Shown: one piece after another, positions 1,943 to 59,840 of the stretch
Layout: every line of letters begins with the position of its first letter
Position numbering within the stretch: the first letter of the stretch is position 1
Source of the DNA: Hyaloraphidium curvatum SAG 235-1
Lineage: Eukaryota > Fungi > Monoblepharomycota
Assembly: GCA_025558095.1 (NCBI GenBank)
Contig: JAIVFI010000037.1
Location: 62,001 to 126,000 of the forward strand
DNA length: 64,000 bases
Direction: 5' to 3'
Translations under genes and position numbers: made by a program
Notes under the pieces: generated by a model
Told to the model about the DNA's origin: nothing
The model's database searches: none
What the model saw: the letters and a program-made list of their open reading frames with translations, nothing else

Positions 1943-4323
1943 TCACGCCAGGACGCACCCCTTCGACCCCGTCAGCCATTGTCCCCCCCGAAAGCGAGCG
2001 GCCCGCCCACCTCGTAGTTCTTCTCCTTGACCTCGGCGCACTTGGCCACGTACGGCGGGAACCCCAGCAGCGGCATGAACACCCTCGGCTTGCCCGGGAT
2101 GTTGGCGCCCAGGTACCACGAGTTGCACCCCGGGAATATCGTGAGCCCTGCGTGCGCCGTGCGGGGTCAGCCGGCGTGCGCGGAAACGCGGCGGGGGGAA
2201 CGGGTACCGGCGACCATGTTCACGTGCCCCACCCACTCCTTCTGCGCCTCCTCCGTCGCCTCGATCGTGCGCACGCCCTTGGCGTCCAGGTCCTTGATCG
2301 CGTCGGCGACCCACTCCGTGTGGTGTTCGCTGCAGCGTCCCGAGGGGGGTCAGCCGCGCGTCCCGGGGGAAACGACGCGAGCGGACCCACATGGAGGTCA
2401 GCATGTTGGTCAGCACGGACGGCGACCCCGGCCCTGCGATGTGGTACACTGCCCCGCCGGCCGCGCGTCAGCCCCCGCACGGCGCGCAAGGGCGCGGACC
2501 CACTGTTGGGGAACCCGTGGATGAACAGGCCGAGGTAGTTCACCGGCCCCGCCTCCCACTCCTGTTTGAGCGTGCGCCCTTCGCGCCCGACGATGTTGAT
2601 CTTGTCCAGGCTCCCCGTCATCGCGTCGAACCCGATCGCGAACACGATCGCGTCGAACGGCCCGTATTCGCTCCCGTCCTTCAGCACGATCTTGCCGTCC
2701 GCGCCGCCGGTTTTGGCGATCGGGTTGTCCTTGATGCTCACGAGGGAGACGTTCGGGCGGTTGTAGGTGATGTAGTAGTCCGTGTCGACGCAGAGGCGTT
2801 TGCAGAAGACGGGGTGCGAGGGGAGGAGCTTCTCGGCGACGGAGGGGTCCTTGACGAGGGACTTGACTGGGTGTGGTCGGCGCGGGTCAGCGGCCTTTCG
2901 GTAGCGACGGAGCGGTGCGGAAACGCACTTTTCCTATGGAAATAACCTTTCACGTACTTGGGAAATCGGTTTGGGAAGGGAGGGAGGACCGGTCAGTTGT
3001 GCGGGAGGCGGTCCGCCGCCCGGCCGCGACCCACGTCGTTGCACACGGGGTTGAACACCAGGTCCGTGAAGCACGTGCCGAAGCTGAGCCCCCCGATGGC
3101 CCAGAACTTGTCCAAATGCGCGTCCAGCTCCTCCTTGGGCACCTCGTCGAACGCCTTCTCGGGCACGGGGAACGACCCGGCGCCGAACCCGGACTCGGCG
3201 GACTTCTTGCACAGCTCGGCGTAGTCCACCTTCTGGTTCCGGACCTCCTCCTCGGTGAGCTTGCGGTTGTACGCGGGGGCGGTGTAGGTCGGGGTGCGCT
3301 GGAAGACCGTGAGGTGCTCGGCCTGCTGCGCGATGATGGGGATCGACTGGACCGCCGACTGCCCCGCCGTCCGGACCGTCAGCGACACCTTCCCACCCGC
3401 AGGCCGCGGTTGGGACCCACCGATCCCGTGCCGATCACCGCCACCTTCTTCCCGGTAAAGTCGACCCCCTCGCGCGGCCACTGCCCCGTGTGGTAGAACT
3501 CGCCCTTGTACTCGTCCAGCCCCTCGAATTTGGGCACCTGCGGCGCGCTGAGGCACCCCGTGGCCAGGACGAGGTGCCGGCCGCGGTGCTCCTCGGGGAC
3601 CTTGTCCTTGCCGCGGAGCAGCTTGATCGTCCACACCTTGTCCTTCTCGTCCCAGATGCAATCGGTAATGTTGGATTCGAACTGCACCAGCGGGGCGAGC
3701 TTCCAGCGCGCCATGAGGTACTCTATGTACTCCATGAGCTCGGGCTGCGGGGCGTAGACCTCCTTGAAGGACCACTCCTTGTACAGCTCGGGGTCGTGCT
3801 TCATGGTGTAGTCGGCGGATATCACGTCGACGCGGGCGCCGGGGTAGCGGTTCCAGTTCCAGGTCTGCCGCGGGGGAAGGCGGGAAGCGCCGGGGGAGCG
3901 GGTCGGGACGGTACGGGGATCAGGAAAACGGATCACGGGGATCGGCGCGGCCTGGGGGCCGCCGCCCGGGGGGAAACCCACCCCGCCCGGCTTGTCCGAC
4001 CGCTCGAAGACGCGGACGTTCTTGCCGTCGATGTTGTGCATGCGGTGGGCCTGCAGCATACCGGAAAAGCCTGCGCCGACGATGAGCTGCGTTGCCGGGG
4101 CCGGGGAGGAGCGGGGAGCGGCGGAAATCGGCGGTCGGGAGCGTCAATCGTCGAGAAAAGGGGTCGAAGGGGCAGACGACGCGTGGATGGGGGCCGATTG
4201 CGGTGCCGGGTGACATCCGATGCCGCGGGTTCGAGCGGTCCGTCAGCACGCCGGCCTTCGCGGAGGGCAGCGGAGGCGACGCACCGCATCGTAGACGGTT
4301 TCCTTCGCGTCCTCCTTGGCCAT
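1943..4323 (-). CDS. Baeyer-Villiger monooxygenase (cyclohexanone/phenylacetone monooxygenase family), multi-exon
   Basis: Spliced DALIVGAGFSG, GGTWNWNRYPGARVD, BVMO fingerprint YKGEFYHTGQWP, VAVIGTG, VFQRTP, FAIGFDA and SWYLGANIPGKPR. GT-AG introns restore the frame. Confidence 0.93.
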
Positions 4324-4851
4324 GGCGGCGGTTCGCCTTCGCTACAGGGGGTGGGAGACTCTGTTGTCGTCGGAGAGTGCGCGGACGTTGCGCCGCGGGC
4401 CGAGGGCGCCGCCGAAGGGACCAAACCCGATCGGTGGGAACTGTCTGCAGCCTAGGTGGCAAGTCGTTCCTTCACTTTTGCCCAACACGCTGACCAGATC
4501 CGATTGTTTGGATGGACTCGAAGTGACCGAGGGCCGATCTCGGTGCAGGGGCGAAGTTGCGGGCGGCATAGGGAGCAGGTGCCGATTGCCTGGGAACAGA
4601 AAACATGGCCATCAAGTATTACTGGAATGCAATCCATCTCTTTTCCAATAATTTGAAGAGCTGAGGCGGTGAAGTGACCCCGCGCAGGCCGGTCGGTCCG
4701 GTCGGTCCGTTCAACCCCTGGATCCATAAACAAACGCCCAATTCCGGACGCATCGCGGACGCCTGCCGCTCCAAGGCCCGAGCACGGCCTTCAGCGGGAA
4801 AAGGCGTCAACCGTCACGCGCTCGGGGGCTAGAACCGGCGGCTGCATCGCC

Positions 4852-7800: not shown

Positions 7801-8041
7801 TTTCCCCTCCAATCCAGATCAACTCGTGAAGTCGAGATCACAAGATCGCATTCGCACGCCCCCAAGGCGGCCAAGCACGACGTCCACGGTGCCGGCGCTC
7901 AGAAACTCGCGCGCGGCGACCCCTTCGGGGGCCGCGCTGTCGGTGGTTCCAGCTCAGACAAAGATCCTAGGAAGCACGGATAGCATGACCCTGGCAGGCC
8001 GATCCATCCCTGGATCACGGGGCTCCAAGGCGGAAATGTAG
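4852..8041 (+). CDS. CCDC39: Long coiled-coil protein, probable divergent CCDC39/FAP59 (axonemal 96-nm ruler)
   Basis: About 1000 aa of coiled coil over 4 exons (introns ~5193-5253, ~5497-5547, ~6283-6337). N-terminal LPPFASHANRALAEEI and central LRAHKASLVEQWQ resemble CCDC39. Ser/Pro-rich tail. Confidence 0.6.
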
Positions 8042-8213
8042 AACAAACTGAGCAATCTGAAGCAGACAGCGACTTCTAGTACGTTAAACAGCCCAGACAC
8101 AGTTCCTTGCGTTTGGCCGCCTACCCCAAAACCTACATTCGGTACAAGAGGCAAGAACGTGACGGCATTCTAGGCGGCGGGCGTGTAGCCTTCCTCGATC
8201 TGACGTTCCGCGA

Positions 8214-9570
8214 TCAGTAGCCACTCCACTCAGATCGGCCGCCCTTACCCACCATTTTCGAGATCTCCTCGACCGTCTTCTCGGCATCGGCACCTTCGAA
8301 CTCAAAGGTCTTGACCCCGACGACGGCACCCGTGGAGTCGGTTGTGGTCTGGGTGACGGTTGCCTTGACCCACTCCAGCGTCCGATCCGGGCCGTACTTT
8401 CGCCGCTTCTTCATCGTGTAGTCTGCGCAGATGCGGTTGATCAGACTTGGCCGCAATCAGATACGACTGTACTCACGGTGAACGGAGGGTGCGAAAGTCT
8501 TTTCGAGAACAGCTTTGACGTCCTGCAGGTCATTCGTAAAGTCCACGCGCGATGAAAGCAAGAGACATTTCCCACCGCAGGGATCCCCTTGACGGTCTCG
8601 CCGAGCCTCTCCTTCTCCGCCGGGGTCAGCGACGCGAGTGCGTCCTTGACCATCTTGGAGTCCTTGCCCTTGACGCCCTCCGTCACCTTCTCCAGAACGC
8701 TGGGGGGAAGGGCGTCCTTGATGTCTTGGGCCCAAACCGGAAGGCCGCCGTCCGCTCCGCCGGCAACGTCGCTCCCGACCACGAGCTTTGCCCATCCGGG
8801 AACGTCCTCGTGGTGATCCGATTCGACCTCGCCCCCGGCGGGCCCGAAACCGCCTCCACGAGCCAGCGCCATTCTCTTTTCGCTTTCCGCAGCGGCCGCA
8901 GCGGATTGGGCTTGGACGGTGGCAGGGTCATTGAGGAGGCCCGGAGCAGGCGAGCGTGAGATGTTGACAGGTCCAAGCTTCTTGAAGGCCGCAACGATGG
9001 CAGCGTTGGAGGGGTCCGATGGATTCTCGGCGCGGAACCAGTGATCCAGATCCTTCCTGGAATAGGCAAGAAGGCAAATGAGAGGCGCAATGCCGAACGC
9101 GTGCCGGTGAGCCTTTTGCTGGACAGGGGTCGAGGAAGCCGCGCCAAGCTCACCCTTCGGGCTTGCCCTCGTTCTCCCACTATCATTGTCGATGAAAAGA
9201 GGATGAAACGGGAAGAAAGGACCACGCCAAGGAGCGAATGGAGATAACGCCACTGGTGAGCGTGCGCCCGCAACCGCGCTTTCCATTCCACCCACGAGGA
9301 AGTAAGCTGCCACCTGATGGTCGTACTGTGCGGTGAGGTTGACGATTCGAGGCGATTCCATTGTTCACATCGGCACGGTGTGGTTGCGGTCGTCCGAGCC
9401 CGGCGCGCGTCGGCGACGTTCGGAAGCGAGAATGCAGGCGAACGGGCGTCAAATCTGCCCGCGAAAGCAAAGCATCGCGTTGAACGCACGAAGTCCATGA
9501 CGACCTTGTCGTCGGTGACATCCTTGACGTGCGCAATGAGCGCCTCCTCGGGTGAAAGCGGAGCCGCCAT
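8214..9570 (-). CDS. Uncharacterised multi-exon protein with small 5' exons
   Basis: ATG at 9570 (MAAPLSPEEALIAHVKDVTDDKVVMDF), canonical introns, coding-like ORFs 8441-9361 and 8214-8456. Confidence 0.55.
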
Positions 9571-10264: not shown

Positions 10265-11800
10265 ATGTCCGTGGAGGCGGGCGGTGAAGGACAGCGCGTC
10301 ATTGACGAGCTGTTTGTTCCCATCGACCTGGACTCTTTCGCTCGCTGGGCGCGGCCTCGCATCCCCGGCTTCAAAGGCCCTTTGACTGCCAAGCAGTTCT
10401 CCAAGGGGCTCTCAAACCCGAAGTACCTCATCACGGACGAGGGCACAGGAGACCGCTATGTTGTCAAGCGCAAGCCTCCAGGAAAGCTCCTCATCGAGAC
10501 CGCTCACCAAGTCGACCGCGAGTTCCGCGTCTTGGACGCGCTCGGCCGCCACGCTCCCGACGTTCCTATCCCCAAGGTTTACGGCCTGTGGGCTTTCTTA
10601 CGCTGCGGCTGCAGTTGGTGAAGGCACTGACAGCGTTGTCTCCCACGATGTTTCTCAGCTGCGAGGACGACAGCGTCATCGGTGCCACGTTCTTTGTCAT
10701 GGAGTTCTGCCCTGGGCGCGTGTTCCAGGACCGCCCAAGTGCGTTATCCCCGCCGAGCTCTGACCTCGCCGTGTCTCACTCGGGGCTCTCGAAGCGCTCA
10801 CCCACCTTCCCCCGAACGAGCGGCGCGAGTGCATGATGGACTTCATTCGCAGCATGGCCAAGCTTCACAAGGCGGACCCCGTCCAGATCGGGCTCTATGG
10901 CCAGAAGGGCTACACGAAGATGGGAAACGGCTACCGTGAGTCGGTGCTTGTTTTGCATTAGCGCAGCGTCCCTAATGGTCCCCACGTTGGATGACCTTGT
11001 GTTTTCTGCCCTGCTGGTCGACTTCTCGCCGTGTAGCACGCCAGATGGCCACCTGGCTCCGCTCTGAGCAGGCCTACCTTGCGGCCATGAAGCGCTGGAA
11101 CGACCCGACGGCCAAGGACTGGGAGATTCAGGGTCACGATCAACTGATTGACTGGATGAACAAGAACCTGGTCAAGGACGAGATTGCCTGTATGCACGGT
11201 GATCTTGGCCTACACAACGTGGTAAGTACTCCGCGATGCTCGGTGCCGTTGTTTGGCTGACCCGGGCGTTCTCAGATCTTCCACCCGACGCGCCCCAAGC
11301 TCAGGGCAATGCTCGACTGGGAAAACTGCACCATCGCCCATCCTCTCTCGGTTTGTCGTTGAGTCAGCCACATTTTGGCGGAAGCTCATCGCTGGTCTTT
11401 CAGGATCTTGCCACGATCATCGGTTCGTACTACAAGCCTTCGTTCGAGCTGCCCGAAGGTTTCCCGACGACGGACGAGCTGATGAAGGCCTACTGCGCCG
11501 AGGTCGGCAGGCCTTACCCCATTCCTGGTTGGTCTGCTGCGCTGCAGCGTAATGTTTGAGGCCTAATCGCGTTTTCGCCAAGGGTTCAACTTCTGCCTCA
11601 CATGGAACGCCGTCAAGCTCATGATCCAGCTTCAGGGCATCTGGGCACGGTCGCTGGACCCGCAGCAGCGTTCGCCCGAGTCGCAGACCGATGCGAGCAA
11701 GCTGCTGCCCGGGTTCCGGCGTTGGAATGCCCTGGCTCTTGAGTTCTCGGGCCTCGGGCCGGCGTACGACGACAGCAAGGAGATAAAGGTCCGCCTGTAA
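10265..11800 (+). CDS. Aminoglycoside-phosphotransferase-family protein (stand-alone ACAD10/11 N-terminal kinase-like domain)
   Basis: QFSKGLSNPKY, VVKRKPPGKLL..AHQVDREFRVL, FFVMEFCPGRVF, HGDLGLHN, LDWE and HPLSDLA motifs across exons. Ends ...KEIKVRL-TAA. Confidence 0.9.
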
Positions 11801-37527: not shown

Positions 37528-38713
37528 ATGCAGCATATTGACCGGAGATTGTGGGTCTCCGCGACCCTCCGCGCGCCGACCTGCGCCGTGTGGGGCCGCC
37601 GCCTCGCCGCGGCGGCCGCCCGCCGGCCGCCGGCACGCGGGGGGACCTCCGACGGCGCCCCGAGCTCACGGCCGACCGCCCGCTCAGGCTATACACGGAC
37701 CGCGCCTACCGTTTCAAATATGTGACGGACTTTATCGAGTTCGGCGAGAAGGACCTGGCCGCCATCCGGGCCATCAGGGAGCCGCTGCTGGACCTTGTCC
37801 CCGCCATTGTCGATGCCGTCTACGATAAGCTTTTCTCGTACGATATCACAAAGGTGGGCACTTCCATGGCCTTTGTGTCGGCGTGTGCCCGCGAGGCTGA
37901 CCCGCGGTGGGCCCCGGAAGGCCCTCTTCATGACCCCCCGCGTGACCGACTACGACGGCGACTACCCGGCCAACCTCGCCGACTTCGGGCTGGACCACCC
38001 ACTCATGAGCAAACGGAAGGACCACCTGGGCCGTTACCTGCGGATGGTCATCTCGGGGGAGCTCAACGAGGCGCTCCCTATGTACATGGAGCTCGTGGGC
38101 AAGGTCCACAATGGTTGGCAACGGGACGGCAACGTCAGGAAGGCCGGGAAGAAGGGAAGAGACAGGCTTCACATCGACTATGTTCATATAAACGGGTTAT
38201 TCGTTGGTTTTGCTTGGGGCATGGGTTGGAGAAGGATCCGCTGACATTGACCCGCCTCGACACCAGGGTTGGCTCAATTCCTTCGTCAGCTCCACGCTGA
38301 TAGACTCTGGGCTGCCCATACGCCAGGTGGAGGGGGCAGTGGCGGCGTTCACGCGGATATTCTGGCTCCAGAACGATTTCTTCGCGCGGCAGTGGGTACC
38401 GGGCGCCGAAGGCACACGCGGCCACATTATCTGACCTCGTCATCCCTTCCTCAGATACGTGACCATGGACTGGACCGAGAACGATGAGGCGGCCGCTGCG
38501 GGCGAAGAACCGGCGGCGCCCTCAAAAGCCTCGTCTCCCCCGGCGCCTGGGCTCTCCGAGGAGGCGGCTTCTTCGGAGCTTCGACCAACTACGAACTCTG
38601 TGGTTGTCGCGCCGAGTCCGGGAGGGCTGCGGACCGACGTCGCCACTCTGGCTGCCGTGGGTATCGGGAGCCTGCTGGTCGGGATCCTGGTGGCGCGCCT
38701 GATAGACCGATGA
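37528..38713 (+). CDS. Protoglobin/globin-sensor domain protein with a C-terminal TM
   Basis: LYTD..YRFKYVTDFIEF...D...VPAIVDAVYDKLFSYDIT, VGKVH and WLQNDFF. Hydrophobic tail LAAVGIGSLLVGILVARL. Confidence 0.85.
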
Positions 38714-40252: not shown

Positions 40253-43200
40253 CTATGTTCGCTCGAGCGTTCTCGCAGCCTTCGGAGCATGCGCCAGCTT
40301 GATGAGCACGTCCGCGCTCTCACCCGTCTCATCCACGAGCCTGCGGAAGAGCCCGTCCTTCTTGTCCACCAGTTCCGCGGGCGTGCCAATCTCGGCTATC
40401 TCTCCCTGCTCAAGCACGCAGATCCGATCGTAGTCGATGATCGTCTGAAGGCGGTGCTGGAGCCAAACGAGGGCATCAGCCGTAAAGTGATTTGAGCATG
40501 GAGGCAGCTTACAGCGATGGTGATGATGGTTTTGTCCCTGAAAGAGGGATGCTCGCGAAGAACGCTCTGCATCAGGGCGTCAGAGTCGTAGTCGAGGCTT
40601 GCAGATGCCTAGTGCCGACAGCCAATCAGGAAAGACGATAGCAGCAGACCGCAGAAAGCGCACCTCGTCCAGGCAGACGATCCGCGAATTGCGGATGATT
40701 GCGCGCGAGAGACACAGGAGCTGCCGTTGGCCCTTCCTTACGCGTTAGCACGACTTCCATGTCGCACACGCCCATCCCCACCTGCGACAAGTTCTCCCCG
40801 CCTTCCGCGATGGGCATGTTTAGGCCCAGCGGGTTGGCCTGGACGACTGTCTTTAAGTCGCCGCACGTCTCCAGCACGGAAAGGATCTCCGCGTCCGAAT
40901 GCTCGCCGAACGGGTCCACATTGTATTGGAGCGTGCCCGAGAAAACCTGTGACAATGCCAGTTAGGGATCTCGCCCGCAGAGACCATGCTGGAACTCCAC
41001 GAACCACCGGGTCTTGCGGAATGACCGAGAGAGCGCGGCGGAGGTGCGCGAGGCCGAGCTTCGAGATGTCGATGCCGTCGATGAGGATCTGTCCGCCGCA
41101 CGGCTCCACCAGGCGGAAGAGGGCCAACGTGATAGACGATTTCCCGGCTCCGGTGCGCCCGACGATGCCGATCCGCTCTCCAGCAGCAATCGTGAGGTTG
41201 ATCCCCTTGATGACAAGCGGCAAGTCCGGCGCGTATCTCATCTCCAGGTTCTTCAGCTCAATCTGCCCTTTGGAAGGCCAGCTGGGTGGCGGCTTCAGCT
41301 CGGTCACTTCGGCGGCTTCCGACGGCAGGTGGTCGATGTAGTACTGAAGGCGTTCGACGCCGTTCAGCTGCAGCTCCATTTCCGTCAGATTGCGCATGAG
41401 CCCGTTTAACGTCCCCGTGATCCCCAGCGCGTACGTGACGGCGAGGCCCAGGACCGCAGGCGAACCCCCGCCCGCGACCGCGCCGACCGCGAACATCGAA
41501 GAAGAGAATACAAGGAGCGCCGACATGACCTCGATCCGCAGTCCGAGCCAACGTCCAACCTGGATGGTAAGCCAGTTGAAACGGTTGTTAAAATCGAGGC
41601 GGTTCTGATTCTGCTTGATGAAGCTGAGCTGCAAGTGATACGACCGCACCGTCGAGAGCCCGGAAAGCGTCTCCGAAAAGTTTGCGTACAAAGGGCTACG
41701 CGAGTTGGAGTCCAGTCTCTTGAGCTCTCGAGCCGTGTTGCGAGCGACGCGCGAAACGAAGTAGTAGACCACCAGCAAGGGAAGGCAGACGGCAAGGAAG
41801 ACCGGCAAGAGTGTGGCAATAAGAACGATGGTGGTGAGGACGATGCTGAACATGAGGAGGAACAGCCTGCAAAGAGCGTGTCAGACGGTCCGCAATGCAA
41901 AAATAGAGGCCCAAACCTGAAGAATTCGACGAGCTGAGTGTCCACGGCATCAACCTGCAAGCCGGCTGTGGTCAAAAGGACAGATGAGGGAGATTACGGG
42001 CGCTCTCACGTCGCGGCTGAACCGGTTTAGAATCCTGCCCGCTGGCGTCCGGTCGAAAAAGGAGACAGGTGCTCGGACGAGCCTGAGCGCAGGTCAGCTC
42101 CCGAAACTCCCTTCTCGAACAGCAACTCACTTTGCGATGGCTTTCTCGTGGATCCCCCGCGAAGCGAGCATGCCCGCAAATGCAAACATCAGGCCGCTGA
42201 TGAGGAGCAGCGCTGCCATGCACGCGCCGAGCGCAAAGTACACCCCCAGGTACTGCGACAACGAGTAGGTCGGGAACCGGTTCTGGGTCCATGCCGTGAG
42301 CCAGAGGTTGATTCCGATCCCGGCCACCTGGCTCAGGACCATGGTCGAGACAATGGCGATCCAGAGGAACCAGCCACCGCCGTTGGAAACGTAAGCGGCA
42401 TAGACACTGAAAGGAATCCGACCCGTGTTGCGCTCCTCCTCCAAGTTGTGCTTCCGGCCAGCAGTTCCGGCGCGGGCAAACGTATCGGCTGCCGGAGCTC
42501 CATCTGCAAGTCCCCGCTGCGGAGCCGAGCTGCGGCGACGTGCTTTGCCCTGATCTGTGGACATCTTGACCACTTCCGTAGCGTCGGAGCCGTCGCCCCC
42601 CGCAGTGCTCGTCCCGTCATCGCCGCCCACGATACCGAGGGTGTGCGTCGCGGGTACAATGCCCTCTTCGACATCTTCAGCGTCCTCGACTTCGCCGAAC
42701 ATGTCCATGTCGTCGCCCGGATCGGTCCTCGCAGTACTCTGCCGGCGTTGGAGTGGAACGCCATCCGCTTCGCGCAGCTTCAAGACCTCGTCAACCGAGC
42801 TCACGTCCGATTCGTCCTCGTCCAGCAGATCGTCCTCATGAGAGGTCGTCGAGTAATCCGCGACGAGCTTCGACAGATAACCGTTCCGCGCCAAGAGCTC
42901 CTCGTAGGTTCCCTGCTCAACGATCTCGCCCCTGTCCAAGCAAACAACGAAATCGGCATGCGGGAGGACGTGGAGTTGATGCTGGTAGAGGCTTCAGCTC
43001 ACGGTTCTTGTGCACCGAAAGAGAAAGACCTACCGTCGCCATCAGGATGGTTTTCCCCTTGAGAACTCCCAAGACGGCCTCGTGAAGGATGTGCTTCCCA
43101 ACGTGCGCGTCCACAGCGGAGAGAGGATCGTCCAGGAAAACGACGTCGTGCTGCGAATAGACAGCCCGGGCCAGAGAGATGCGCTGAACCTGTCCACCGC

Positions 43201-45363
43201 TGCAGTTTATGCCGCGTTCGCCGATCTCGGTCAGGTCACCGTTGGCGAAAATCTCGAGGTCCCTCTGCAAAGCACACGCCCGCACGGTTTCCCAGTAGCG
43301 CTTCTCGTCGTACGCCTGCCGCGTCCCGAGGGTAATGTTCTCCCGAACCGTGGCGTTCATCACGAAAGCACGTTGGGCGCAGTAGGCAATGGTAGGCCGC
43401 GACGACGATCCGGCATAGACGACACTGCCGTCCACTAGCTTCATCTCGCCCGCCAACGCCATGAGGAGGCTCGACTTGCCGCTTCCGACCGGGCCAACAA
43501 TGCACACAAGAGACCCCTTGGGCACGGACAGGTTGATCGAGCGGAGAGACGAAAACTTGTCCTCTTTGGCCTTCTCCAGCTCGGTCTTCGTTGCGGTCGC
43601 CTTGGTGGATTCCAGCGGGACGACGGATGTTCCGGCCTCCAACTGCGCCAACGAGTCTGTCGGGTTCGCCGTGAGCCCTCGGTTGCCGAAAAAGCGCCTT
43701 CGCGGTCCGTTCGAGGCGGTCAGAGTGGCATTGGGCGACGCTCGTGCCGAGAACGTGAGGTCGTTCGGGTCCAGCTTTCCCTTCTTCACGGCCTTCAAAT
43801 CGGGAACGGCCTCCTCCGGAGACTCCCACTTGAATGTGGCATCCGAGACAACGATGGCGACGGGAGAGGAGGCACTCGCGACCGAATCGGTCGTTCCGGT
43901 CGTACCGAGACCCGGGTGCCCGATGGCCTTCTCATCCAGCTCATCGGCCATGAGAAGAGCCTGCAGCCGCTTCAAGGAGACCAGCGCGTCTCCCACGGTC
44001 GAAATCGAGGTAGGCTGATGAGGTGTCAGTCCTCTTCAGGGAACGGCACGCGGACTGCAGCTTACAAGAGACATCAGGGGAAAGCGAAGGACGTTCATAT
44101 ACGCCAGCGAACCCAGGATGGTAGCAGCGTTCATGCTGCCGCCGAGAGCAGCATCTGCGTGGGACAGGGGCTCAGCAAAGCATAATCCGATAGCGCGAAA
44201 ACACCAACACGTGGCAAACATGCCCATGGAAGCGAGAACCGGTTGCAGCACGTAGATGCTCATGACAAAGGCGCGCAGTAGCGAAGCTTTCCTGATGATG
44301 CGCAGCTCCTCCTCGCGGAGTTCCGACAGGTGCTTGAGCATAGCGTCGCCCCAACCGTACAGCTTTATGACCCGAATGCCGCTAACGAGCTCGCCGGTGA
44401 CTTTGACGCGTTGGTCGGTAAGCTTGTTTGCCGCCTTCCTGTACGCCATGGTGAACTTCATCAGGCTCCCACTCAGGGGGATCATCACGACCAGAATCGT
44501 CAAGCCGACGAGCGCAGCAGGGGCGCCGAGGTTGATGATGAGGACGATTGTAATCTCGAGAACCAAGAGTGGAGAAGCCCACAAGGACTGCGCTTCTGCG
44601 AGGGTCCGTTCCATCCGCGAAGTGTCGGTGGAGAGCACGTTGATGGCCCTGCCCGCCGAAAACTGCGTCCGGGCAGCCTGAGAGAGGCGCAAGCACTTCT
44701 GGAACACCGCAGCAATCAGCGACGTCCGAACTTCGAGGCCTGAACGCTGGGAGAACGTCCAGAACTGGTTGGCCGAGAAACTGTTCAGCAGCTGGAGCAA
44801 CAGAATGCCCGTCGCGTAGCCGAATCCCACGGCGGTGGAAGGCGCAGGGGCTCCGGGGGTCGGGGGCCCAATGAACCAGAAGGTCCAGTACGCCGTCAGG
44901 AAGGCAATGAGCCTCTGCAGGAGGATCGGGCTGATCACCTGGTAGACCGGGGTCAGGAAGGCAATGAGGCGCTGCAAGAAGAGCGAGTCACCTGTGAGAA
45001 ATCACCCATGAACCGGAACACCGAGCCGGTCAGCCAAGTCCGGCGGAATGACCTCCAGAGCGCTATGGCGAGCGAAGGCTTCGGGCGACCGAGCTCGGCT
45101 TCCCACTCCCGCAGAAAAGTCTGCTCGCACAGCAGGTTCGACCGCAGCCACCTCGACAACGGAGGCGCATCTTTGGCCTCCACCGTGTTGCGGTAGCCGA
45201 ACCATATCAGGGGATCGAGCCAGGTGTAGGTCAGCAGCTGGAAGATGTTGGCTCCGTCCTCGGGCGATTCCGCGTGCCGGGAGTAGAACGGCGAGAACGG
45301 GTCCGCTTCCGGATTGTCCGAAGCCAATTCGTCGTCGCGATCGAGGCCCGTCCTGGCCGCCAT
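40253..45363 (-). CDS. ABC transporter, ABCC/MRP (YOR1/YCF1-like), multi-exon
   Basis: Two TMD-NBD halves: GPVGSGKSS, CSGGQVQRISLAR, LDDPLSAVD, FFDRTPAGRILNRF, GRTGAGKSS and ENLSQGQRQL. Confidence 0.97.
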
Positions 45364-45750: not shown

Positions 45751-47913
45751 CTATTGCTTCCCGGGCACGGCCGCGGCGAGGCTCGCGATCCGCCGCCGGA
45801 GCTTGAGCTCCAGCAGCCTCTCGTACTTGAGCTTCATCAGCTGCTCGGCCTTCCTCAGGAGCAGCTCCTCCAGCTGCAGCATCCGGAGCTCCTCCTGCTC
45901 CAGCGCCAGCAGCTCGTCGAACTCGGCGATCAGCAGCTCCTCGCGCACCTTCCGGAGCGACCGGTGCGCGGAAGCGATGCGCTCGCAGTCCTTTCTCGAG
46001 AGCTCGTGCAGGCAGCCCGCCGGAAGGGGATCGACGTCGTGCAGCCCAGTCTCGCTCTCCAGGCGACGCTTGGGGATGTTAGCCTCCCGATTCGCGCGCG
46101 CGTCCGCACGAATCGTCCTCGGGCTCCGGGGGTCGTTCTCCTGCAGGCCAGCGGCCCAGGCGTCGGCGCCCGAGACGCCTTTGGCGGCACCGCGGGCTTC
46201 GAACGTTTCGAAGACGCGGGGGCCGCCGACTTCACCCCCCCTCGTCCGGTTAGACTGCGCGTCCGCACGAATCGTCCTCGGGCTCCGGGGGTCGCTCTCC
46301 TGCAGGCCAGCGGCCCAGGCGTCGGCGCCCGAGACGCCTTTGGCGGCACCGCGGGCTTCGAACGCTTCGAAGACGCGGGGGCCGCCGACTTCACCCCCCC
46401 TCGTCCGGTTAGACTGCGCGTCCGCACGAATCGTCCTCGGGCTCCGGGGGTCGTTCTCCTGCAGGCCAGCGGCCCAGGCGTCGGCGCCCGAGACGCCTTT
46501 GGCGGCACCGCGGGCCTCGAACGTTTCGAAGGCGCGGGGGCCGCCGATGGGGCCGCCGATCCGGCCCACGAAGGAATGCTCGAGGTAGTTGCACACGGAG
46601 CTGTTCAGGGTCGGCATCTCGGCGGCGGTCGGCTCGCGCTGCTGCTCAAGGCAGCTATCCAGAATGCGCTTCGCCGCGGTGTCCTCCTTGTGACGGAGGC
46701 ACTCCAGCACGTGCCACAGAGGCCGGCCCTCGGCCTCATCGTCTTCCCGAGCGTCCCACAACTCGACTGCCGCGCCATCCCCGCGGCGCAGTAGCGCCTC
46801 CAGAACTGTCCGAGCCGTAAGATCTCGTTCCGCGATGGCGGCGAGGTTCCTCGTGCGGGTGTACGACTCGACGACGGTGCGGAGCTCGCGTCGCGCGTCG
46901 GCATCGTCGCGGAGAAGGCGCGCCACGGGCAAGTCCACACGGGCAATGTAGGCGAAGGTGACGAGAATGGCCGCGGCTTGCAGCGTCGCAGGAGGTCTGG
47001 AGGGGTGGGTGAGTACGTAGAGGAGGCGACCGTGGCGCAGCCGGCGGAGGTGCAGGTCAGCGCCGCCGAAAAAGTCGTCATGGATGCCCAGCGCGTCGGA
47101 TCCGATCCACTCCGCCCCCGCAAGCCAATCCACTGCGAATCGTTCGAAACGATGGCCGATGTGGCGCGAGGCGATGGCAAGATCGCAGTGTTCGCCAACG
47201 GGTCCTTCGACGAGGCATCGAAAGGTGCGCGAGATGAACGGTTCCCAAACCTCGCGGAGGCTCGCCTTGTTCTCCGACCACGCAGACGGCTCGGCAACAA
47301 AAGGAACGGCGTCCACAATGGCCATGCAGACCCGGTGGCCACACGCGTCCGCGATGACGGTCATGATCGGCACCCAGAAAGCCCGTATCCAGAACATGGT
47401 GATGCAGAGCTTCCCGTCAGCGACGGCACTGCCGTGCATAAGCCACGAGATTCGGTGGATAGCGAAGTGCAGAAGCATGACGAAGCGGAGGACGAATGCG
47501 GCATCCTCGGCGGTGATCTTGCCGAACCCGGACCGTCCGCCCGGCTCCACCCAAAGCCCGAAAAGCACTGAGTCAACAACTTCGCCGGCGCCGTTCGACA
47601 GGGCTTCCTCACGAATCTCTGTGCTGTGTGCCGCGAGATCCGCGATCACCTCGGCGCCGAGCGCGGCGCCGAGCAGGGCCGGGTGCATGCCGGGCGCGGA
47701 AGCGTCGGAAGGCGTCGCCGTTCCATCGCTGGCGGGGCGAGCGTCCTCCACGAGACGTAAGGCGCGCCTGATGCTGCGCAAAAGCTTCTGAGACGGTTCG
47801 TCTTTCGAAGGTTCAGGCTCTGCGCCCGGTGCGGTCAGAGGCACGGGAGCGCCCGGCGACGCAGATCCCGAAGAGTGAGGGAGCGAACCCGCGGCAGAGG
47901 TCATGGCTTGCAT
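45751..47913 (-). CDS. Uncharacterised protein with an internal 53-aa tandem repeat and C-terminal coiled coil
   Basis: Uninterrupted ORF of more than 700 aa. Start uncertain. Confidence 0.55.
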   Translation of the reverse strand: MQAMTSAAGSLPHSSGSASPGAPVPLTAPGAEPEPSKDEPSQKLLRSIRRALRLVEDARPASDGTATPSDASAPGMHPALLGAALGAEVIADLAAHSTEIREEALSNGAGEVVDSVLFGLWVEPGGRSGFGKITAEDAAFVLRFVMLLHFAIHRISWLMHGSAVADGKLCITMFWIRAFWVPIMTVIADACGHRVCMAIVDAVPFVAEPSAWSENKASLREVWEPFISRTFRCLVEGPVGEHCDLAIASRHIGHRFERFAVDWLAGAEWIGSDALGIHDDFFGGADLHLRRLRHGRLLYVLTHPSRPPATLQAAAILVTFAYIARVDLPVARLLRDDADARRELRTVVESYTRTRNLAAIAERDLTARTVLEALLRRGDGAAVELWDAREDDEAEGRPLWHVLECLRHKEDTAAKRILDSCLEQQREPTAAEMPTLNSSVCNYLEHSFVGRIGGPIGGPRAFETFEARGAAKGVSGADAWAAGLQENDPRSPRTIRADAQSNRTRGGEVGGPRVFEAFEARGAAKGVSGADAWAAGLQESDPRSPRTIRADAQSNRTRGGEVGGPRVFETFEARGAAKGVSGADAWAAGLQENDPRSPRTIRADARANREANIPKRRLESETGLHDVDPLPAGCLHELSRKDCERIASAHRSLRKVREELLIAEFDELLALEQEELRMLQLEELLLRKAEQLMKLKYERLLELKLRRRIASLAAAVPGKQ
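46097..46547. repeat. 159-bp tandem repeat, about 2.8 near-identical copies
   Basis: gtccgcacgaatcgtcctc recurs at 46102, 46261 and 46420. Confidence 0.95.
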
Positions 47914-53276: not shown

Positions 53277-53409
53277 CCTCCACGATCACTTCCGACTCTT
53301 CCAGGATCGCTCCTCACTTCTCCTCCAGCTTAGCCTTGAGGTCCTCCACGATCGCCTCCGACTCTTCCAGGATGGCCCATCACTTCTTCTCCAGCTTGGC
53401 CTTGAGGTC
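53277..53409. repeat. 66-bp tandem repeat spanning the SRPBCC stop codon
   Basis: Two copies of cctccacgatc.c.tccgactcttccaggat...tcacttct.ctccagctt.gccttgaggtc. Confidence 0.85.
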
Positions 53410-54143
53410 GCCGAGAGCCTCCTTCTTCTTGTACTTCGAATCCTCGACGACGGCAAGGGCCTGATCTCCGGCCGACGAGAATTCGGTCGTCCACGAGACG
53501 AAGGTCGAGTTGTCGGCGGTGACGCGGTGGAGAGTGATCGTGTGGTTCGCGCCGAGGTACGAAGGAGCCGGCGTGGCCGTCACGAGCTCCCAGCTGAGCG
53601 AGGGCGTCAGATCTGGGGGAGGAACACGTCGCAGGGGATAGAACAGGAGGAATCGAGGGACCAGAGGTAATCCGCGACACATGCAATGCCATCGACACGA
53701 AAGATGAGAGGCAGGATGGCGGAAACGCGTCTGGGAATGCCCACCGCTGAGTTCAACCAGGCGAATGACCTGGTTGGAGCCGTCCTTGTATTCGACCGTT
53801 CGGGTGCTCCCGCCGACCTGATCCGGGGCACCGCCCTCGACCTTGGAGCTTTTGACGGCCGACCAGAACGACGAGAGGTCGAGGGGCCGGATCTGGGATG
53901 CGTCGCGACGTCAGCAACGAGGGAAGAGGCGCGCCCTCGGCATCCCGCCGATGCGCCCTCGCAACGACTCGATGGAGATGCCAACGAGCCGAACAAGACG
54001 CCTTGGGAGGGGAACGCACCGTTGCCCAAACGTCTTCCAGGGGGGCTCCAATGACGACCGACTCGACCTTCAAGACGCGTCGTCAGCCATACTCCGGCGG
54101 CCCATCGCGGCGACGCTCTCACGCTGCGGGTTGCGGACTGCAT
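53380..54143 (-). CDS. Bet v1/SRPBCC (polyketide cyclase-like) protein
   Basis: Spliced VESVVIGAPLEDVWAT-IRPLDLSFW...TITLHRVTADNSTFVSWTTEFS...DSKYKKKEALGDL. Confidence 0.8.
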
Positions 54144-54345
54144 TTTTGACGTTTCGATGAGGGGATTCGACCGGGTGTCTCGGCTGAATGGAATGCGGTA
54201 GAAGCTTGACGCTGCACCTCCAGCCGTGTGCGCTGAGTTCGAATCACGGAGCACAACCCCCGGTCCAAGGCTATATGGAGCGTCTCCTACATACGCAAGC
54301 CCATGAATCCAATAGATAGACAACTTACGTCGCGCCCTCGGGGGC

Positions 54346-56401
54346 TCACACCTTGACCGCCGCGTCCTGCAACTTCGCGGTCTCCTTGGCCACCTCGGCC
54401 CCCTCCGACGCGGCCTCCGAGTCGACCTCCCCGCCGAGCGCCCTCATCTCCGCCTCGAGCTGCTTGATCTCCTCGTCAGACACGGTCTTGAGCGGCCCCT
54501 TGTACCGCGTCCGTGCCCAGAGCAGCCAGAAGAGCTCAACGCCGATAAGGAAGGCAGCCATTACCAGGGGAGCAAAATTGAAGTTACTGAGGTCGCTGGC
54601 GATGGGCATCTCGGTCTGCGGTGCCGGAGGGGTCAGGCAAAGATCAGCGGAAGGTTGGCGCCCGGACGAACCGGCAGCATGAAGATCACGAAGAGGAAGG
54701 CGACAAAGATCACGGCGATCCATCCGCTGGCAAACGTGTAGCGTCCGAGGTTGAACGGCCCCGGAACGAAAGTGTTTCTTGCAACCTGATGATCGGTGGT
54801 CCGATGAGAAGAGCTCAGCGATCGCCGCAGCCCGACTCACCGTGATGCGGAAGAAGGTCGGAATGACGCATGACACGAAGAAGCACGCGGTGCTGATCGA
54901 GGTCATGGCCGGAAAAACGAGGTCCGAGAAGAGCGTGAACATGCCCAGGACGAGGGTGATGAAGGTCGTGAGGAGGATGGCCCTGACGGGGCTTTTGAAG
55001 CGGGGGTTGATGTGGTACCAGAACCCGCTGTACGGGAGCGCCTTGTCCCGAACCAGGGAGAAGAACATCCTCGATGTGACGACCACGGAGGCGCACGAGG
55101 TCATGAGGAACGAGATCATCATGATGGCGAGGAACGCAGTGGTCGGGCCCAGGCCGACCGTGTCGAGCCACATCTGCACGAAGGCGTCGTAGTCGCTGTT
55201 GAGTGTGGCTTCGAGGTCCTGCACGATGAAGAACTGGCAGCACCAGAGGAAGAATCCGCCGACGAATCCGAAGACGCAGGTCCAGACGAGCGACCAGCTT
55301 GCGCTGGTGCTCGAGGCGGTCGTTTCCTCGGCGATGTGCGACGATGCGTCGAAGCCAACGATGTTCCACGCCGCGGGGAGCAGTCCGATGAGTGCAACGA
55401 GCACGTTAGAGTCCCACCCGGTGTAATTCTGAAACTCCAAGAAGACGAACGATCCAGATTGGAGCGTGGGTGCCGTGCACAACGGCCAGATGGCGATTAT
55501 GATGGTACCTGGCAAGAACGAGTAAGCCTGAGAGGTCTCCCACGACCTCTCTCGACAGTACCGATCATCACAAAGTACGAAGTCCATTGCGAGATCATCG
55601 GGAGCCAGTGCTCGCCGAAAATGTTGATACCTGGCGATCCGGACGTCAGAAACGGCGTGCGGCGACCCCCAGGCCAGTCAACTCACATGCGACGAGGACG
55701 AGGAACAGCACGTAGAAGCCGTACTCGACGTTCCTGAACTCTTGGATCTCGGGAGACCATTCCGAGTTGATCTCCCACATCAGGAGCACAAGGTACGCCG
55801 ACCCCTGACAGGCGTTCGCCAGGCCAGCCACGTTCGCGAAGTAGTTCATCCAGGCCGTGTTCCAGGCAGCAAACGGCCCCCACTTCTCGCCTCCCAGCTT
55901 GTAGGCGAACAGGTAGAGCCCGCCCATGGACGGGAACGCGGAGCAGAGCTCGGCCATGGAGAGCGCGACGCAGCCGACGAGCAGCGAGACGGGGAGGAAG
56001 GACCACATGACCGTGGCAGGGCCACCGGTGGTCAGGGCGTAGTTCTGGTTTGTGGGCAAGGAGTGGTTGATCACGAAGGGGTGGGTGGGGCAGGTCAGCT
56101 TGAATCTCCGGGATTCCGCCCCATTCCGAGGTACCCACCATGAGCGGAACATTGAGCAGCACGCAGACGTTGACGTACTGCCGGAATGCGCCCGGGGGAA
56201 CGGCGGAATCAGCATCCTCCCGGATACGCTCGACGCGCGAGGACCGGAACGCACGTTGAGCGCGAACGTCGTGATCCGGTTGAACGGCCGGTCGGTCTCC
56301 TGCTTGTACCCGAGGTTCGCGAGCACCATGCGGTCCTCGATGGGTATCTCCTTCTCGGCGAGGCCAAAGAGCTTCCGCAGAAAACCCTGACTCTCGAACA
56401 T
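54346..56401 (-). CDS. Amino acid permease (APC superfamily, GABA/choline/polyamine permease type)
   Basis: LANLGYKQE, TGGPATVMW, SMAELCSAFPSMGGLY, GFDASSHIAEET, SRMFFSLVRDKALP and P.RA motifs. Confidence 0.93.
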
Positions 56402-57084
56402 CTCGGCGGGGGCGCGGCGGCGCGGGGGCGGGAGCGGCGGGGGCGGGGAGAGGGACTTATGGGGAGCCGGCGCGGCCGCTGTGCCCGGCGGGGGGGGGGA
56501 CGGCGCGGGAAGCGCGGGGGGAGGGGAGATACGGCCGCGGGTTTCGCGCCTGAAGGCTGGCTGATCGGGGCGGTGCGATGCCGCCCAGTTGACTCGCCGG
56601 CCGCAGCTCAGCACGGCCGGACCGACTCCATCCGTTGTACAACGCCGTCGTATCCTTCCGAAGCTAATGGGGATGCGATCGGTGGGCTGGGATCGGCGGG
56701 ATTCCAGGCCCCGGGCGGTGATGGGAGGGGGTGGCGCGGGACCCATCATCGGCGCCCGATGGTGTTGCGCTCCGGGGCGCCGAGACGCGGGGAATCATCC
56801 GACATTCGTGGAAAATGAATCATGACTTATATGCTGCGGGGATGCTGGCTGCTTGGAATGATCGCAGGCGGCTACGGGGGTGGAATATGCGGGCCGCCTT
56901 GCGTACACGTGAGAACGATCGGCCCCGAGGCGCTTCCGGCCGAACACCTCGAACGGGACCGAGCGCCGGCCGTAATCCGGCTTCCCTTAGTCCATCCGAT
57001 ACGCGGATCCATCTAGTCCGCTAGCTCCAATACACCCGCCCATGGCGTCTCGCCAACCGTGCCAAAGCTCCCTCCTTGCCGTCG

Positions 57085-58395
57085 TCACACCTTCGCCTCC
57101 GCACCCTCCCCTCCGCTACGTTCCCCAACCACTTCCCCCTCTCCCTCCCCCAGATCCGCCTCCTCCTCCTGCGCCGCGGCCACCAACCCCCTCTCCACCT
57201 CGACGCTCGCCACCTCCCTGATCGATATCCCCCCTTCCCCACCGGGCACCGCGACGAACCCCTCCGCGGCCGGCGGCGCGCCGCACAGCGCCCTCGTCAG
57301 CCCCTTTCCCACGTTCACGCCGACGAAGCCGAGGACGACCAAGGCGCCGCCGGCGACGTGGAAGGGCGTCGGCACGCTCCCCTTGAGGAGAAAGTCGCCC
57401 AGCACCGCGAGGGGGATGGTCAGCGAGAGGCCGACGGTGACGACGAGCGGCGTGACGAGGACGACGGCGAGCAGCCAGAGGAGGTCCGAGAGCGCGGTGC
57501 CCACGCAGGCGTTGAGCGCCAGCGCGCCGGCCGTCCGCGCGGGCAGGGAAGAGGGGAAGGGTTCCAGACCGAAGAGGTGGAGCGGGATGAAGGCGGGCCA
57601 GAGGAGGGCGACGTTCCACAGGCCTACGAAGCCGAGGAAGAGGACGGGGGAGGTGCGCGGGGGGAGGCGGTGCAGGAGGACGGAGTAGCCGGCGTACAGG
57701 GCGGCCGAGAGCAGCGCAGCGGCGTCCCCCGGCAGGGTGCGGGGGCGGGCGGCGGCGCCGTCGTCGAGCGAGACGGCGACGACGCCCAGCAGCGAGAGGA
57801 GCACCGAGGCCAGCTGCACGGGGTCGACGGGGGTGCCCTCGGCGAGGTACGAGAGCGCGAGGGTCCAGAGGCCCGAGGTGGAGGCGAGGATGGTGGCGGA
57901 GGAGACCGAGGTGAGAGAGAGGGCGAGGTTGGAGCAGTAGTTTGCGGCGAACCACAGCAGGCAGAATGCCAGCGAGAGGGCCGCGGTGTTGCGTGCCGGG
58001 ACCGGCTCCGAGACCGAGTCGGGGACGTCCTCCTCGATGTCGGACGGCGGGGCGACTCCGCCGTCCGCGGCCTCCGCCTTGCGCGCCCTGCCGACCCAGG
58101 TCGCCCACCAGTCCGCCCACCGCACGCCGGCGCGGTCGGAGCGCGCCACGGCGGCGCCGAACCCGAACGCCAGCGCGGCGGCGCGCGCCCCGGCGGGCAG
58201 CAGGTACACGGCGAACGACGCCGTGTTGACGAACGTGACGAAAAAGGGCGCGTCGATGTCCGCGTAGATGTCCTGCGTGAGGAACGACGACGCCGTCCAA
58301 ATCAGCACGACGGCGCCGACCAGCAGCAGCCCGAGGGCGCGGGGCCCCAGCCGGGCCGGCGGCGGCGGGCCCAGCGCGGCGTCGATGTCCGCCAT
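57085..58395 (-). CDS. DMT-superfamily transporter (SLC35F/Thi74-like)
   Basis: PFFVTFVNTASF, LWFAANY..NLALSLTSVSSATILASTSGLWTL and TPLVVTVGLSLTIPLA. Confidence 0.9.
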   Translation of the reverse strand: MADIDAALGPPPPARLGPRALGLLLVGAVVLIWTASSFLTQDIYADIDAPFFVTFVNTASFAVYLLPAGARAAALAFGFGAAVARSDRAGVRWADWWATWVGRARKAEAADGGVAPPSDIEEDVPDSVSEPVPARNTAALSLAFCLLWFAANYCSNLALSLTSVSSATILASTSGLWTLALSYLAEGTPVDPVQLASVLLSLLGVVAVSLDDGAAARPRTLPGDAAALLSAALYAGYSVLLHRLPPRTSPVLFLGFVGLWNVALLWPAFIPLHLFGLEPFPSSLPARTAGALALNACVGTALSDLLWLLAVVLVTPLVVTVGLSLTIPLAVLGDFLLKGSVPTPFHVAGGALVVLGFVGVNVGKGLTRALCGAPPAAEGFVAVPGGEGGISIREVASVEVERGLVAAAQEEEADLGEGEGEVVGERSGGEGAEAKV

Positions 58396-58904
58396 GCCTC
58401 CCGCGGGGTGCCGCTGCGGCTCCGGTCGGTGCCGGCTCGCCCCGAGATTGGCCCGGGGGCCTCAATGGGTGCCGGTCTCCAGGCGGCTGCCCCGGCACGC
58501 TATGCGGCTCTGCGGCGCGGGTGGCGCGCCGCGCTCTGCCGGGCCGCGGCCATCTATCTGCCGCTGTGCGTTTGCAATGCCGGGAGACTGGGGCGTTTGG
58601 GGCTCTCCGGCCGCTGCGATTGCGTCGGGTAGGCAAACCCCTTATTTACAACCTGCGAGGTCAGACGCTTTTGTTACTGGCCACTCACGCTGACCGCGGC
58701 TCGCTTGGCACGATGTCGTGAGTAGCGCCGGCCGGCACGGGGACGGGGGACGGGAGGGGATTGCGGGCGACGTGGCGGAGGGAGGCGGAGGCCCGGCGGG
58801 CTCGAACGGCGCGGCAGACGGCGCGCACGGACGACGTCCGGTTCCTCCTCCTCCCGGCGACCCCCTCCCACTCCTTCCCCCATTTCCCCCCCAACTCTTC
58901 CAGC

Positions 58905-59840
58905 ATGCTGACGACCGCCCCCTCCAGGCGCTCCAAAATCGTGAAGCCCGCGGGCCAGAACCCGGACGAGCTGGAGAACCAGGTCGCGGCCAACCTCGCC
59001 GACCTGGAGAACGTGGCGGAGCTCAAGGCGGACCTGCGGCCGCTGCAGATCACCGCCGCGAAGGAGGTGCGCTCGGTTGCGCGCGGGATGGCGGGACGGA
59101 GGGCTGACGACGGGTTCCCCTGCGTGCGCATCTTCGCCTTTGCCGACGTGCCTCGACGACCGCGACCTGCCTTCTCTCGCCGTGCTTCCCCGCCGTGCTT
59201 CCCCGCGCGTGCCGCTCTTTCCCCTCCTCCCCGCCTTCTGCCCATCGTCGCTCGTCTCCTTCTCCGCACACGCTCCCTCGGCTCCCTTAGCTCGACGTCG
59301 GCCACGGCAAGAAGGCCATCCTCATCTACGTCCCCCCTCCCCTCCTCAAGTCCTTCCACAAGATCCAGCCGAGGCTGGTCCGCGAGCTCGAGAAGAAGTT
59401 CTCGGAGCGGCACGTCCTTTTCGCGGCGCAGCGCCGGATCCTGGGCAAGCCCGGCAAGGGCACGCGGTCCAAGCAGAAGCGGCCGCGGAGCCGCACGCTC
59501 ACGTCGGTGCACGAGAAGCTGCTGGAGGACCTGGTGTACCCGACCGAGATTGTCGGGAAGAGGACCAAGGTGCGGACGGACGGGAGCAAGGTCACGAAAG
59601 TGTGGGTGTCTCTCTCCCTGCCGCCGTGCCTGCGCGGCCGTGCTGACCTCCACGGCCCCCCTCGCGAACGATTCCGTCGACCTCCTTCGCCGGCCCCTTG
59701 AAAACAGCTTCCTCGACCGCAAGGACCACACCTCGCTCGAGTACAAGCTCGACACCTTCTCGGCCGTGTACAAGAAGCTCACGGGCAAGGACGTGGTCTT
59801 CGAGTTCCCCAAAGAAGGGACCTACGTGGGCCAGGACTAG
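58905..59840 (+). CDS. RPS7: 40S ribosomal protein S7 (eS7)
   Basis: Exons 58905-59066, 59291-59601 and 59708-59840. [36 protein letters not shown] and [14 protein letters not shown]. Confidence 0.97.

Follow-up and report, generated by a model that had tools for sequence, protein, structure and literature searches.

Branch motifs near the 5' splice site and long AG-free tails in introns of the fungus Hyaloraphidium curvatum: a tendency, not a rule

Several of the longer introns in a 64,000-nucleotide stretch of nuclear, GC-rich (60–71%) DNA from the freshwater fungus Hyaloraphidium curvatum (G000:C37:62001-126000, hereafter the window) carry their best branch motif about 40 nucleotides (nt) from the 5' splice site, followed by no AG until the acceptor, and thus raise the question of where such introns branch and how their acceptors are found. 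How the 3' splice site is located after the first catalytic step is debated, with linear scanning, diffusion and RNA structure all under discussion, and natural test cases are few and, in mammals, entangled with regulation. The analysis described here indicates that an early branch motif followed by a long AG-free tail is a tendency, not a rule, in H. curvatum and two of its relatives; the layout is familiar from rare human introns and unusual in a fungus. Judging from the sequence, RNA junctions and between-species comparison, these introns probably have distant branch points of the human type, with AG exclusion zones and choice of the first AG. From the same evidence we infer that branching takes place at the adenosine near +40 and that the acceptor AG is located by a linear search.

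Branch positions are throughout those of the best motif read from the sequence; d1 is the distance from donor to branch and d2 that from branch to acceptor, i.e., the tail, and introns of 85 nt or more are termed long. The genome sequence examined amounts to 264 kb, namely the window and 200 kb of contig C1 (C1:100001-300000). An intron was considered validated by an RNA contig junction, by an ungapped cross-species alignment over the splice junction, or by conserved flanking exons. The RNA data consist of contigs from a run of H. curvatum (X1) and of a 2025 freshwater metatranscriptome (X2), placed on window positions 53900-59899; these contigs omit GT..AG intervals and are therefore RNA-derived. 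Two relatives, L022 (GC 54%) and L023 (GC 57%), are represented by genomic Logan contigs, found as homologues by a protein search with an unexplained open reading frame (ORF), and are syntenic with window positions 1-13 kb, which hold genes for cyclin, BVMO, CCDC39, gene P and APH. Pfam and protein searches took each exon separately, and junction peptides were aligned locally to the L022 and L023 loci. Two gene finders were employed, one relying on codon usage and the other demanding a branch motif and the first AG. Both over-call long introns; for this reason, their calls entered only the short-intron statistics and the list of candidates. Three of their long, late-branch calls (55509-55686, 40457-40663 and 43990-44208) were resolved by RNA and Pfam into two short introns flanking a small exon. 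A literature search on Hyaloraphidium nuclear introns found no paper.

The long introns are best seen against the default intron of H. curvatum, which is of the ordinary U2 type and 53–62 nt long. About 100 short introns called by the self-trained gene finder in the window and the 200 kb of C1 share the branch consensus (G)CT[G>C>A]A[C>T]. Their median d1 is 40 (interquartile range, IQR, 38–42), nearly all values falling within 36–47, and their median d2 is 17 (IQR 15–20), with no usable d2 below about 11. The proposal made in the earlier note on this DNA that short introns share the early placement of the motif thus holds; the 17 validated short introns of the window likewise have it at a distance of about 39 nt from the donor, with about 19 nt left to the acceptor. 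In a reading-frame test, candidates defined by a donor, a motif at +34 to +50 and the first AG were frame-consistent in 66 of 66 cases, while late-motif candidates were consistent only at chance level.

Altogether 29 introns of the window were validated (17 short and 12 long), 11 by RNA and 18 by comparison with the relatives. The 11 RNA-verified introns include one recognized from a contig loose end; the short ones number seven (53–77 nt). Three RNA-verified long introns, of 224, 106 and 94 nt, combine an early motif (d1 of 41, 45 and 44) with an AG-free tail (d2 of 183, 61 and 50), and two have their sole motif near the 3' end (d1 194 with d2 16, and d1 109 with d2 18). Nine of the 12 validated long introns possess an early motif or an AG-free zone of 52–187 nt, compared with zones of 13–59 nt in short introns; the remaining three comprise the two late-branch introns and one odd case (3034-2895). 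In most validated long introns the sole good motif falls at the distance typical of short introns, and in eight of them d1 lies within 39–46. It should be noted that the sample of 29 is biased, and that in the only stretch covered blind by RNA the ratio of early to late motifs is 3:2. Donor and branch scores of the long-tail introns equal those of short introns, the position weight matrix (PWM) score of the motif being 4.8–7.3 in most long-tail introns and 3.1–3.2 in two. The features are collected in Table 1.

Table 1. Introns discussed in the text, with predicted branch adenosines; positions are those of the window unless a relative is named, and offsets count from the donor
Feature	Position	Strand	Length (nt)	Donor	Branch motif	Branch A (offset)	Tail or AG-free zone (nt)	Evidence and remarks
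RPS7 intron 1	58718..58927	+	210		TGCTGACG (sole motif)	58911 (+194)		RNA junction 58717|58928
RPS7 intron 2	59067..59290	+	224	GTGCGC	GGCTGACG	59107 (+41)		RNA junction; acceptor TTAG
RPS7 intron 3	59602..59707	+	106	GTGGGT	TGCTGACC (CTGAC)	59646 (+45)		Junction in X1 and X2
94-nt intron	56045..56138	-	94	GTGGGT	AGCTGACC	56095 (+44)	tail 50, AG-free	RNA junction
77-nt intron	56178..56254	-	77		TGCTGATT	56209 (+46)	tail 31	RNA junction
SRPBCC-like gene intron	53893..54019	-	127	GTGCGT	TGCTGACG	53911 (+109)		RNA contig
Candidate long-tail intron	53613..53744	-	132	GTGGGC	CTCTCATC	53705 (+40)	tail 92, AG-free	Gene-finder call and frame consistency only; outside the RNA-covered stretch
BVMO intron 1	4087..4284	-	198	GTGCGT	TGCTGACG	4243 (+42)		Synteny-supported
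BVMO intron 1 orthologue, L023	15063-15244		182		GCTAAC	(+42)	zone 150	Same position (YDA|LIVG)
BVMO intron 1 orthologue, L022	15343-15489		147		TTCTGACC	(+45)	tail 102	Position shifted 4 nt
BVMO intron 2	3865..3981	-	117	GTGGGT	CTGAT	3920 (+62)	tail 55; zone 85	Homology
BVMO intron	2895..3034	-		GTGGGT		(+42)		Acceptor by alignment scoring against L022 and L023
Gene P intron 1	9326..9489	-	164	GTGCGT	TTTGAC (weak, PWM 3.2)	9449 (+41)	zone 127	Relatives' exons
Gene P intron 2	9180..9295	-	116	GTGGGT	CGCTCACC	9257 (+39)	tail 77	Spliced in NCBI model P0001
Gene P intron 3	9057..9153	-	97	GTGAGC	GGCTCACC	9108 (+46)	tail 51	
APH intron	10936..11036	+	101	GTGAGT	CCCTAATG (CCTAAT, weak, 3.1)	10975 (+40)	tail 61, AG-free	Ungapped alignment with L022

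Among the RNA-verified cases, RPS7 intron 2 contains a single internal AG, at +34, and its tail is 74% C+T and 5% A. The site at +41 scores 5.6 and every other branch-like site in the intron 1.4 or less. The spliced junction is covered at a depth of 17839, compared with 70 in an unspliced contig, and the intron is therefore removed efficiently. RPS7 intron 3 contains no internal AG at all, and in the 94-nt intron the last internal AG lies 5 nt upstream of the branch A. The 77-nt intron is an intermediate in a continuum of tail lengths. Thus, RNA contigs confirm the two RPS7 introns that the earlier note had described as early-branched, and verify two further ones, probably those it had assigned to a permease with motifs at +44 and +46. 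X2 also holds spliced transcripts of RPS7 and the neighbouring gene, 95–99% identical and with the same junctions, which indicates that H. curvatum or a very close relative was active in that water body.

In the first 13 kb of the window the evidence comes from L022 and L023. The sole internal AG of BVMO intron 1 lies at +28, ahead of a tail that is 65% C+T, and removal of the intron creates the junction YDA|LIVGAGFSG, restoring the FAD-binding motif. In H. curvatum, L023 and L022, the AG-free tails measure 156, 140 and 102 nt, respectively, and MAFFT aligns nothing beyond the ends of the three introns. BVMO intron 2 is in frame and stop-free, and has a weaker GTGAT at +49; its excision joins PGG|TWNWNRYPG, a junction over which L023 is contiguous. 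While L023 is without this intron, it has two other introns nearby.

Gene P (8170-9570, minus strand) owes the recognition of its true structure to two micro-exons, of 30 nt (9325-9296) and 26 nt (9179-9154). Its exon 1 (ending in VVMDF) and the 30-nt micro-exon, which encodes YDHQVAAYFL, are conserved in L022 and L023. In intron 2, whose flanking micro-exons are conserved, an AG located 3 nt past the branch is bypassed; the orthologous introns are 55 nt long in L023 and 78 nt in L022. At the site of intron 3, WENAGMPPERDWEYWF runs uninterrupted in L023, which is intronless there, and the L022 intron measures 77 nt. The window protein is 99% identical to the NCBI hypothetical protein DFJ74DRAFT_692134 of H. 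curvatum, and the public model (P0001) translates through two of the three introns, including 9489-9326. The protein is conserved from KDLDHWFRAE onward; an exon-by-exon Pfam search yielded no match for gene P or for the exons of the SRPBCC-like gene.

The site of the APH intron is intronless in L022, which aligns without gaps over the junction at 89% identity, and shows in L023 a gap of about 68 nt that was interpreted as a short intron; the flanking exons match colinear positions of the Pfam APH profile. Intron positions vary even among these close relatives, L022 being without four APH introns of H. curvatum. Synteny with the two relatives bears out the earlier proposals for the APH intron and for intron 9489-9326, and it supports that for BVMO intron 1, for which L023 offers an intron at the same position.

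AG is excluded from the tails beyond what base composition predicts. The test pooled eight clear cases, each taken from 11 nt past the branch to the acceptor (598 nt in total) and each shuffled separately: GA occurs 23 times and AG not once, compared with 10.3 AGs expected from the tails' own composition, and the product of the single-tail probabilities is about 10^-5. Upstream, in the donor-to-branch segments, AG is present at normal frequency (8 AG and 13 GA in 263 nt). The last internal AG of long-tail introns is found 3–14 nt before the motif, or at most 4 nt after it, which places the beginning of the AG-free zone at the motif. Genome-wide, the chance of meeting no AG is about 0.0025 over the next 156 nt and about 0.001 over the next 183 nt. 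An annotation-free motif scan found the first AG at 90 nt or more in 5 cases, with about 0.8 expected; this excess is modest because AG-free runs of 40–60 nt are common by chance (8–22% of control modules). The tails are C-rich, with 62–75% C+T and 4–21% A. In all three RNA-verified long-tail introns, as well as in the synteny-verified ones, the first AG more than about 11 nt past the branch is the acceptor used, and AGs closer to the branch are bypassed both in H. curvatum (intron 9295-9180) and in L023.

Several observations weigh against distant branching with first-AG choice. The branch sites are predicted from motifs, and the RNA evidence consists of assembled contigs, which cannot show lariats. 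Two of the motifs named in the earlier note are weak (TTTGAC, 3.2; CCTAAT, 3.1). Given their composition, most single tails are not significantly poor in AG (P 0.1–0.8); only the pooled test and the 156-nt tail reach significance. Weaker branch-like sites occur on the acceptor side, such as a GGCTCA-type site scoring 4.7 at +75 in intron 9153-9057, TTTAC 29 nt from the end of the intron in L022, and TTAAT and CTGAT in the L023 tail. Long tails are also unevenly distributed, with 7 of 34 gene-finder introns (21%) in the window and 2 of 92 (2%) in the 200 kb of C1, a tenfold difference. Finally, intron 3034-2895, whose sole good branch motif is that at +42, has AGs at +77, +87, +100 and +106, all upstream of the acceptor favoured by homology. 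The gene finder resolves this interval alternatively into two introns around a 10-nt exon; the case may thus reflect such a micro-exon, a late branch of low strength, or a departure from first-AG choice.

Some of these points would also fit long-tail introns that branch at cryptic, non-consensus adenosines near their 3' ends. The +40 motif would then serve for early recognition or be a relic, and a long polypyrimidine tract would be enough to explain why AG is missing. The weak sites within some tails, the low content of A and G that leaves single tails unremarkable, and the assignment of the +40 site by motif instead of lariats are all in its favour. We nevertheless regard this explanation as unlikely. 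A polypyrimidine tract of equal composition does not account for 23 GAs alongside no AG, and the AG-free zone starts at the +40 motif instead of closer to the acceptor. Moreover, in BVMO intron 1 the motif has been kept at +42, +42 and +45 in the three species while the rest of the intron diverged, and the final 50 nt of RPS7 intron 2 contain three A's and no usable motif.

The preferred interpretation, with distant branch points and first-AG choice, does not require that the position of the branch be measured. According to the earlier note, lariat size may be measured in this lineage from the 5' splice site, with a scan to the first AG following. The second part agrees with most of the introns described above, in which the first AG past the branch serves as the acceptor. 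The first part would place the branch always about 40–46 nt from the donor, as is indeed approximated by nearly all short introns and by the eight long ones with d1 of 39–46. Such a fixed ruler is, in our opinion, very improbable. The sole motif of RPS7 intron 1 lies at +194, 16 nt from the 3' end and downstream of eight internal AGs, and that of the intron in the SRPBCC-like gene at +109, 18 nt from the 3' end; the latter intron is verified by an RNA contig whose loose end at 54020 matches window 53863-53892 exactly. In addition, the motif of BVMO intron 2 is at +62, those of orthologous introns in the relatives are at +54 to +61, and short introns keep the acceptor distance as tightly constrained as the donor distance (standard deviations of 4.3 and 4.5, respectively). 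Of the two exceptions that the earlier note had itself listed, the SRPBCC intron is thereby substantiated; protoglobin intron 1 (37551-37687) is a gene-finder call only. With regard to RPS7 intron 1, it may be added that the start ATG occupies 58713-58715, that exon 1 carries only ATGTC before this intron, and that an in-frame ATG at 58905 within it is a decoy start for ORF-based models.

An artefact, i.e., wrong intron models or a chance succession of GT, CTRAY and a long AG-free run, deserves consideration since modules of this kind often arise by chance, with about 75 of them per 17-nt offset window in the 264 kb. The over-calling of long introns by the gene finder points the same way, as does the candidate 44472-44582, which is frame-consistent and was rejected because it sits inside a membrane helix of an ABC transporter. 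Confirmation of the junctions by RNA contigs and by ungapped cross-species alignments, together with the outcome of the reading-frame test, makes this explanation scarcely credible.

RNA folding offers another route. As in yeast, a stem between branch and acceptor could shorten the distance and hide decoy AGs; the GC-rich tails are foldable, and in minimum-energy structures the path from branch to AG is reduced to 1–28 nt. However, both the folding energies and the path lengths equal those of dinucleotide shuffles (z from -0.7 to +1.7), so that no extra stability is seen. Furthermore, the tails have no AGs to hide, whereas the yeast introns carry masked ones (PMC3239191). A structural mechanism of this type is accordingly quite improbable. 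An Rfam search detected no snoRNA or other RNA in the intron tails.

The interpretation we favour, that of distant branch points with AG exclusion zones, can be put as a sequence of steps. Many longer introns would be the default short module, enlarged by an insertion on the downstream side of the branch. U2 and SF1 would select a consensus site close to the 5' splice site, and the first step would form a lariat loop of about 40 nt. In the second step, the exon would be joined to the first AG more than about 11 nt past the branch, here 50–183 nt away; if so, first-AG choice implies that selection keeps the whole interval between branch and acceptor free of AG. The +40 spacing would not be measured but inherited from short introns and retained during growth on the 3' side, and introns grown on the 5' side of the branch would exist as well. 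Tails would probably grow by local duplication of C/T-rich sequence. Short tandem duplications within the two longest tails, among them a 13-nt unit repeated 2.6 times at 59178-59212 in RPS7 intron 2, suggest growth by slippage. At orthologous positions, H. curvatum introns are longer than those of L023 (164 versus 81 nt, 116 versus 55 nt and 101 versus about 68 nt), which indicates that the tails are labile. Among the genes for splicing factors, SF1 and a U2AF65-like gene, to which the earlier note had pointed, are present, as are Slu7, Prp18 and Cactin; Sde2 gave no match with the yeast-type Pfam model, though the gene may still be present.

A more far-reaching version holds that, in H. curvatum and its close relatives, the spliceosome settles as a matter of routine on a branch about 40 nt from the 5' splice site before conducting an efficient long-range acceptor search through C-rich RNA over 100–300 nt. 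Intron growth would consequently take place mainly on the downstream side of the branch, opposite to the situation in other fungi and animals. We offer this version tentatively, as a possibility with the odds against it. The early-branch layout is not shared by RPS7 orthologues in the distant organisms L024–L030. The RPS7 intron at AKE|LDV is absent in L024 and, where present in distant organisms, is not donor-anchored: in L029 it is 205 nt long, with AGs throughout and CTAAA about 25 nt from the end, and in L026 it is 491 nt long, with AGs over most of its length. The orthologue of RPS7 intron 3 in L024 is about 63 nt long, with CTAAC at +38 and a d2 of 25. As far as predicted branch sites can tell, one and the same intron position with an early branch in H. 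curvatum and a late one in distant organisms shows that evolution can shift intron growth from one side of the branch to the other.

Human introns with distant branch points and AG exclusion zones (Gooding et al. 2006, PMC1431707) are the closest in kind. In the human scheme, the zone has the branch at its 5' edge, and splicing takes the first AG, passing over any that fall within about 12 nt of the branch (PMC1431707). In the introns of H. curvatum, likewise, a long zone that is free of AG, rich in pyrimidines and unstructured has the motif at its 5' edge; AG frequency is normal upstream, the first downstream AG serves as the acceptor, and AGs near the branch are bypassed. The human cases make up about 1 in 160–400 introns, are found in long introns and are linked to regulated exons (PMC1431707), whereas those of H. 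curvatum range from about 2% (tails of at least 100 nt) to 7% (at least 40 nt) of gene-finder introns, with far more in the window. In addition, the tract is C-rich in H. curvatum and U-rich in humans, and the H. curvatum cases include an efficiently spliced ribosomal protein gene. The branch lies about 40 nt from the donor in H. curvatum because the whole intron is small, unlike in humans. Distant branch points adjoining the 5' splice site are also known from mutually exclusive exons, as in alpha-tropomyosin and OGDH (PMC7969005). There, too, the branch is near the upstream 5' splice site and a long AG-free stretch leads to the acceptor; their role, however, is regulatory, enforcing exon exclusion, and in H. 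curvatum nothing suggests alternative exons.

Fungal parallels are more limited. Saccharomycotina introns with branch-to-acceptor distances of up to 166–471 nt have been described (Gahura et al. 2011, PMC3239191) and resemble those of H. curvatum in this distance. The yeast cases need a stem that shortens the distance and masks AGs, and are said not to scan (PMC3239191), whereas H. curvatum has neither internal AGs in the tails nor excess structure. In Schizosaccharomyces pombe, branchpoint-distant 3' splice sites depend on Cactin, Tls1 and Sde2 (PMC9508853). The introns of this fungus, too, are numerous and short, with a spacing of branch and acceptor that matters, and a Cactin orthologue is found in H. 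curvatum. However, S. pombe reporters splice poorly once the spacing reaches 30 nt, and a longer spacing is present in only about 40 of 5250 introns (PMC9508853); the tolerance of 50–183 nt in H. curvatum is therefore unusual for a fungus.

If branching occurs where the motifs predict, H. curvatum would supply many simple substrates for studying the acceptor search, namely constitutive, efficiently spliced introns whose acceptor is 50–180 nt or more from the likely branch. Branch-point predictors limited to the last 50 nt of an intron will miss such branches, and in-frame, stop-free tails may pass for low-complexity coding sequence.

Three repeated elements should also be recorded. A 90-nt intron-like module is present in three copies (L003:3823-3912, L010:1781-1870 and L018:1021-1110, i.e., at C1 113823, 181781 and 261021), identical in all features compared: GTTAGT, CTCTGACA at +36 and a 54-nt AG-free tail. 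The copies belong to a repeated element, probably a transposon. A 159-nt unit is repeated 2.8 times (97% matches) at 46098-46547, inside the long ORF 45751-47688 on the minus strand, and the SRPBCC-like gene has at its 3' end, at 53277-53409, a 66-nt unit repeated twice.

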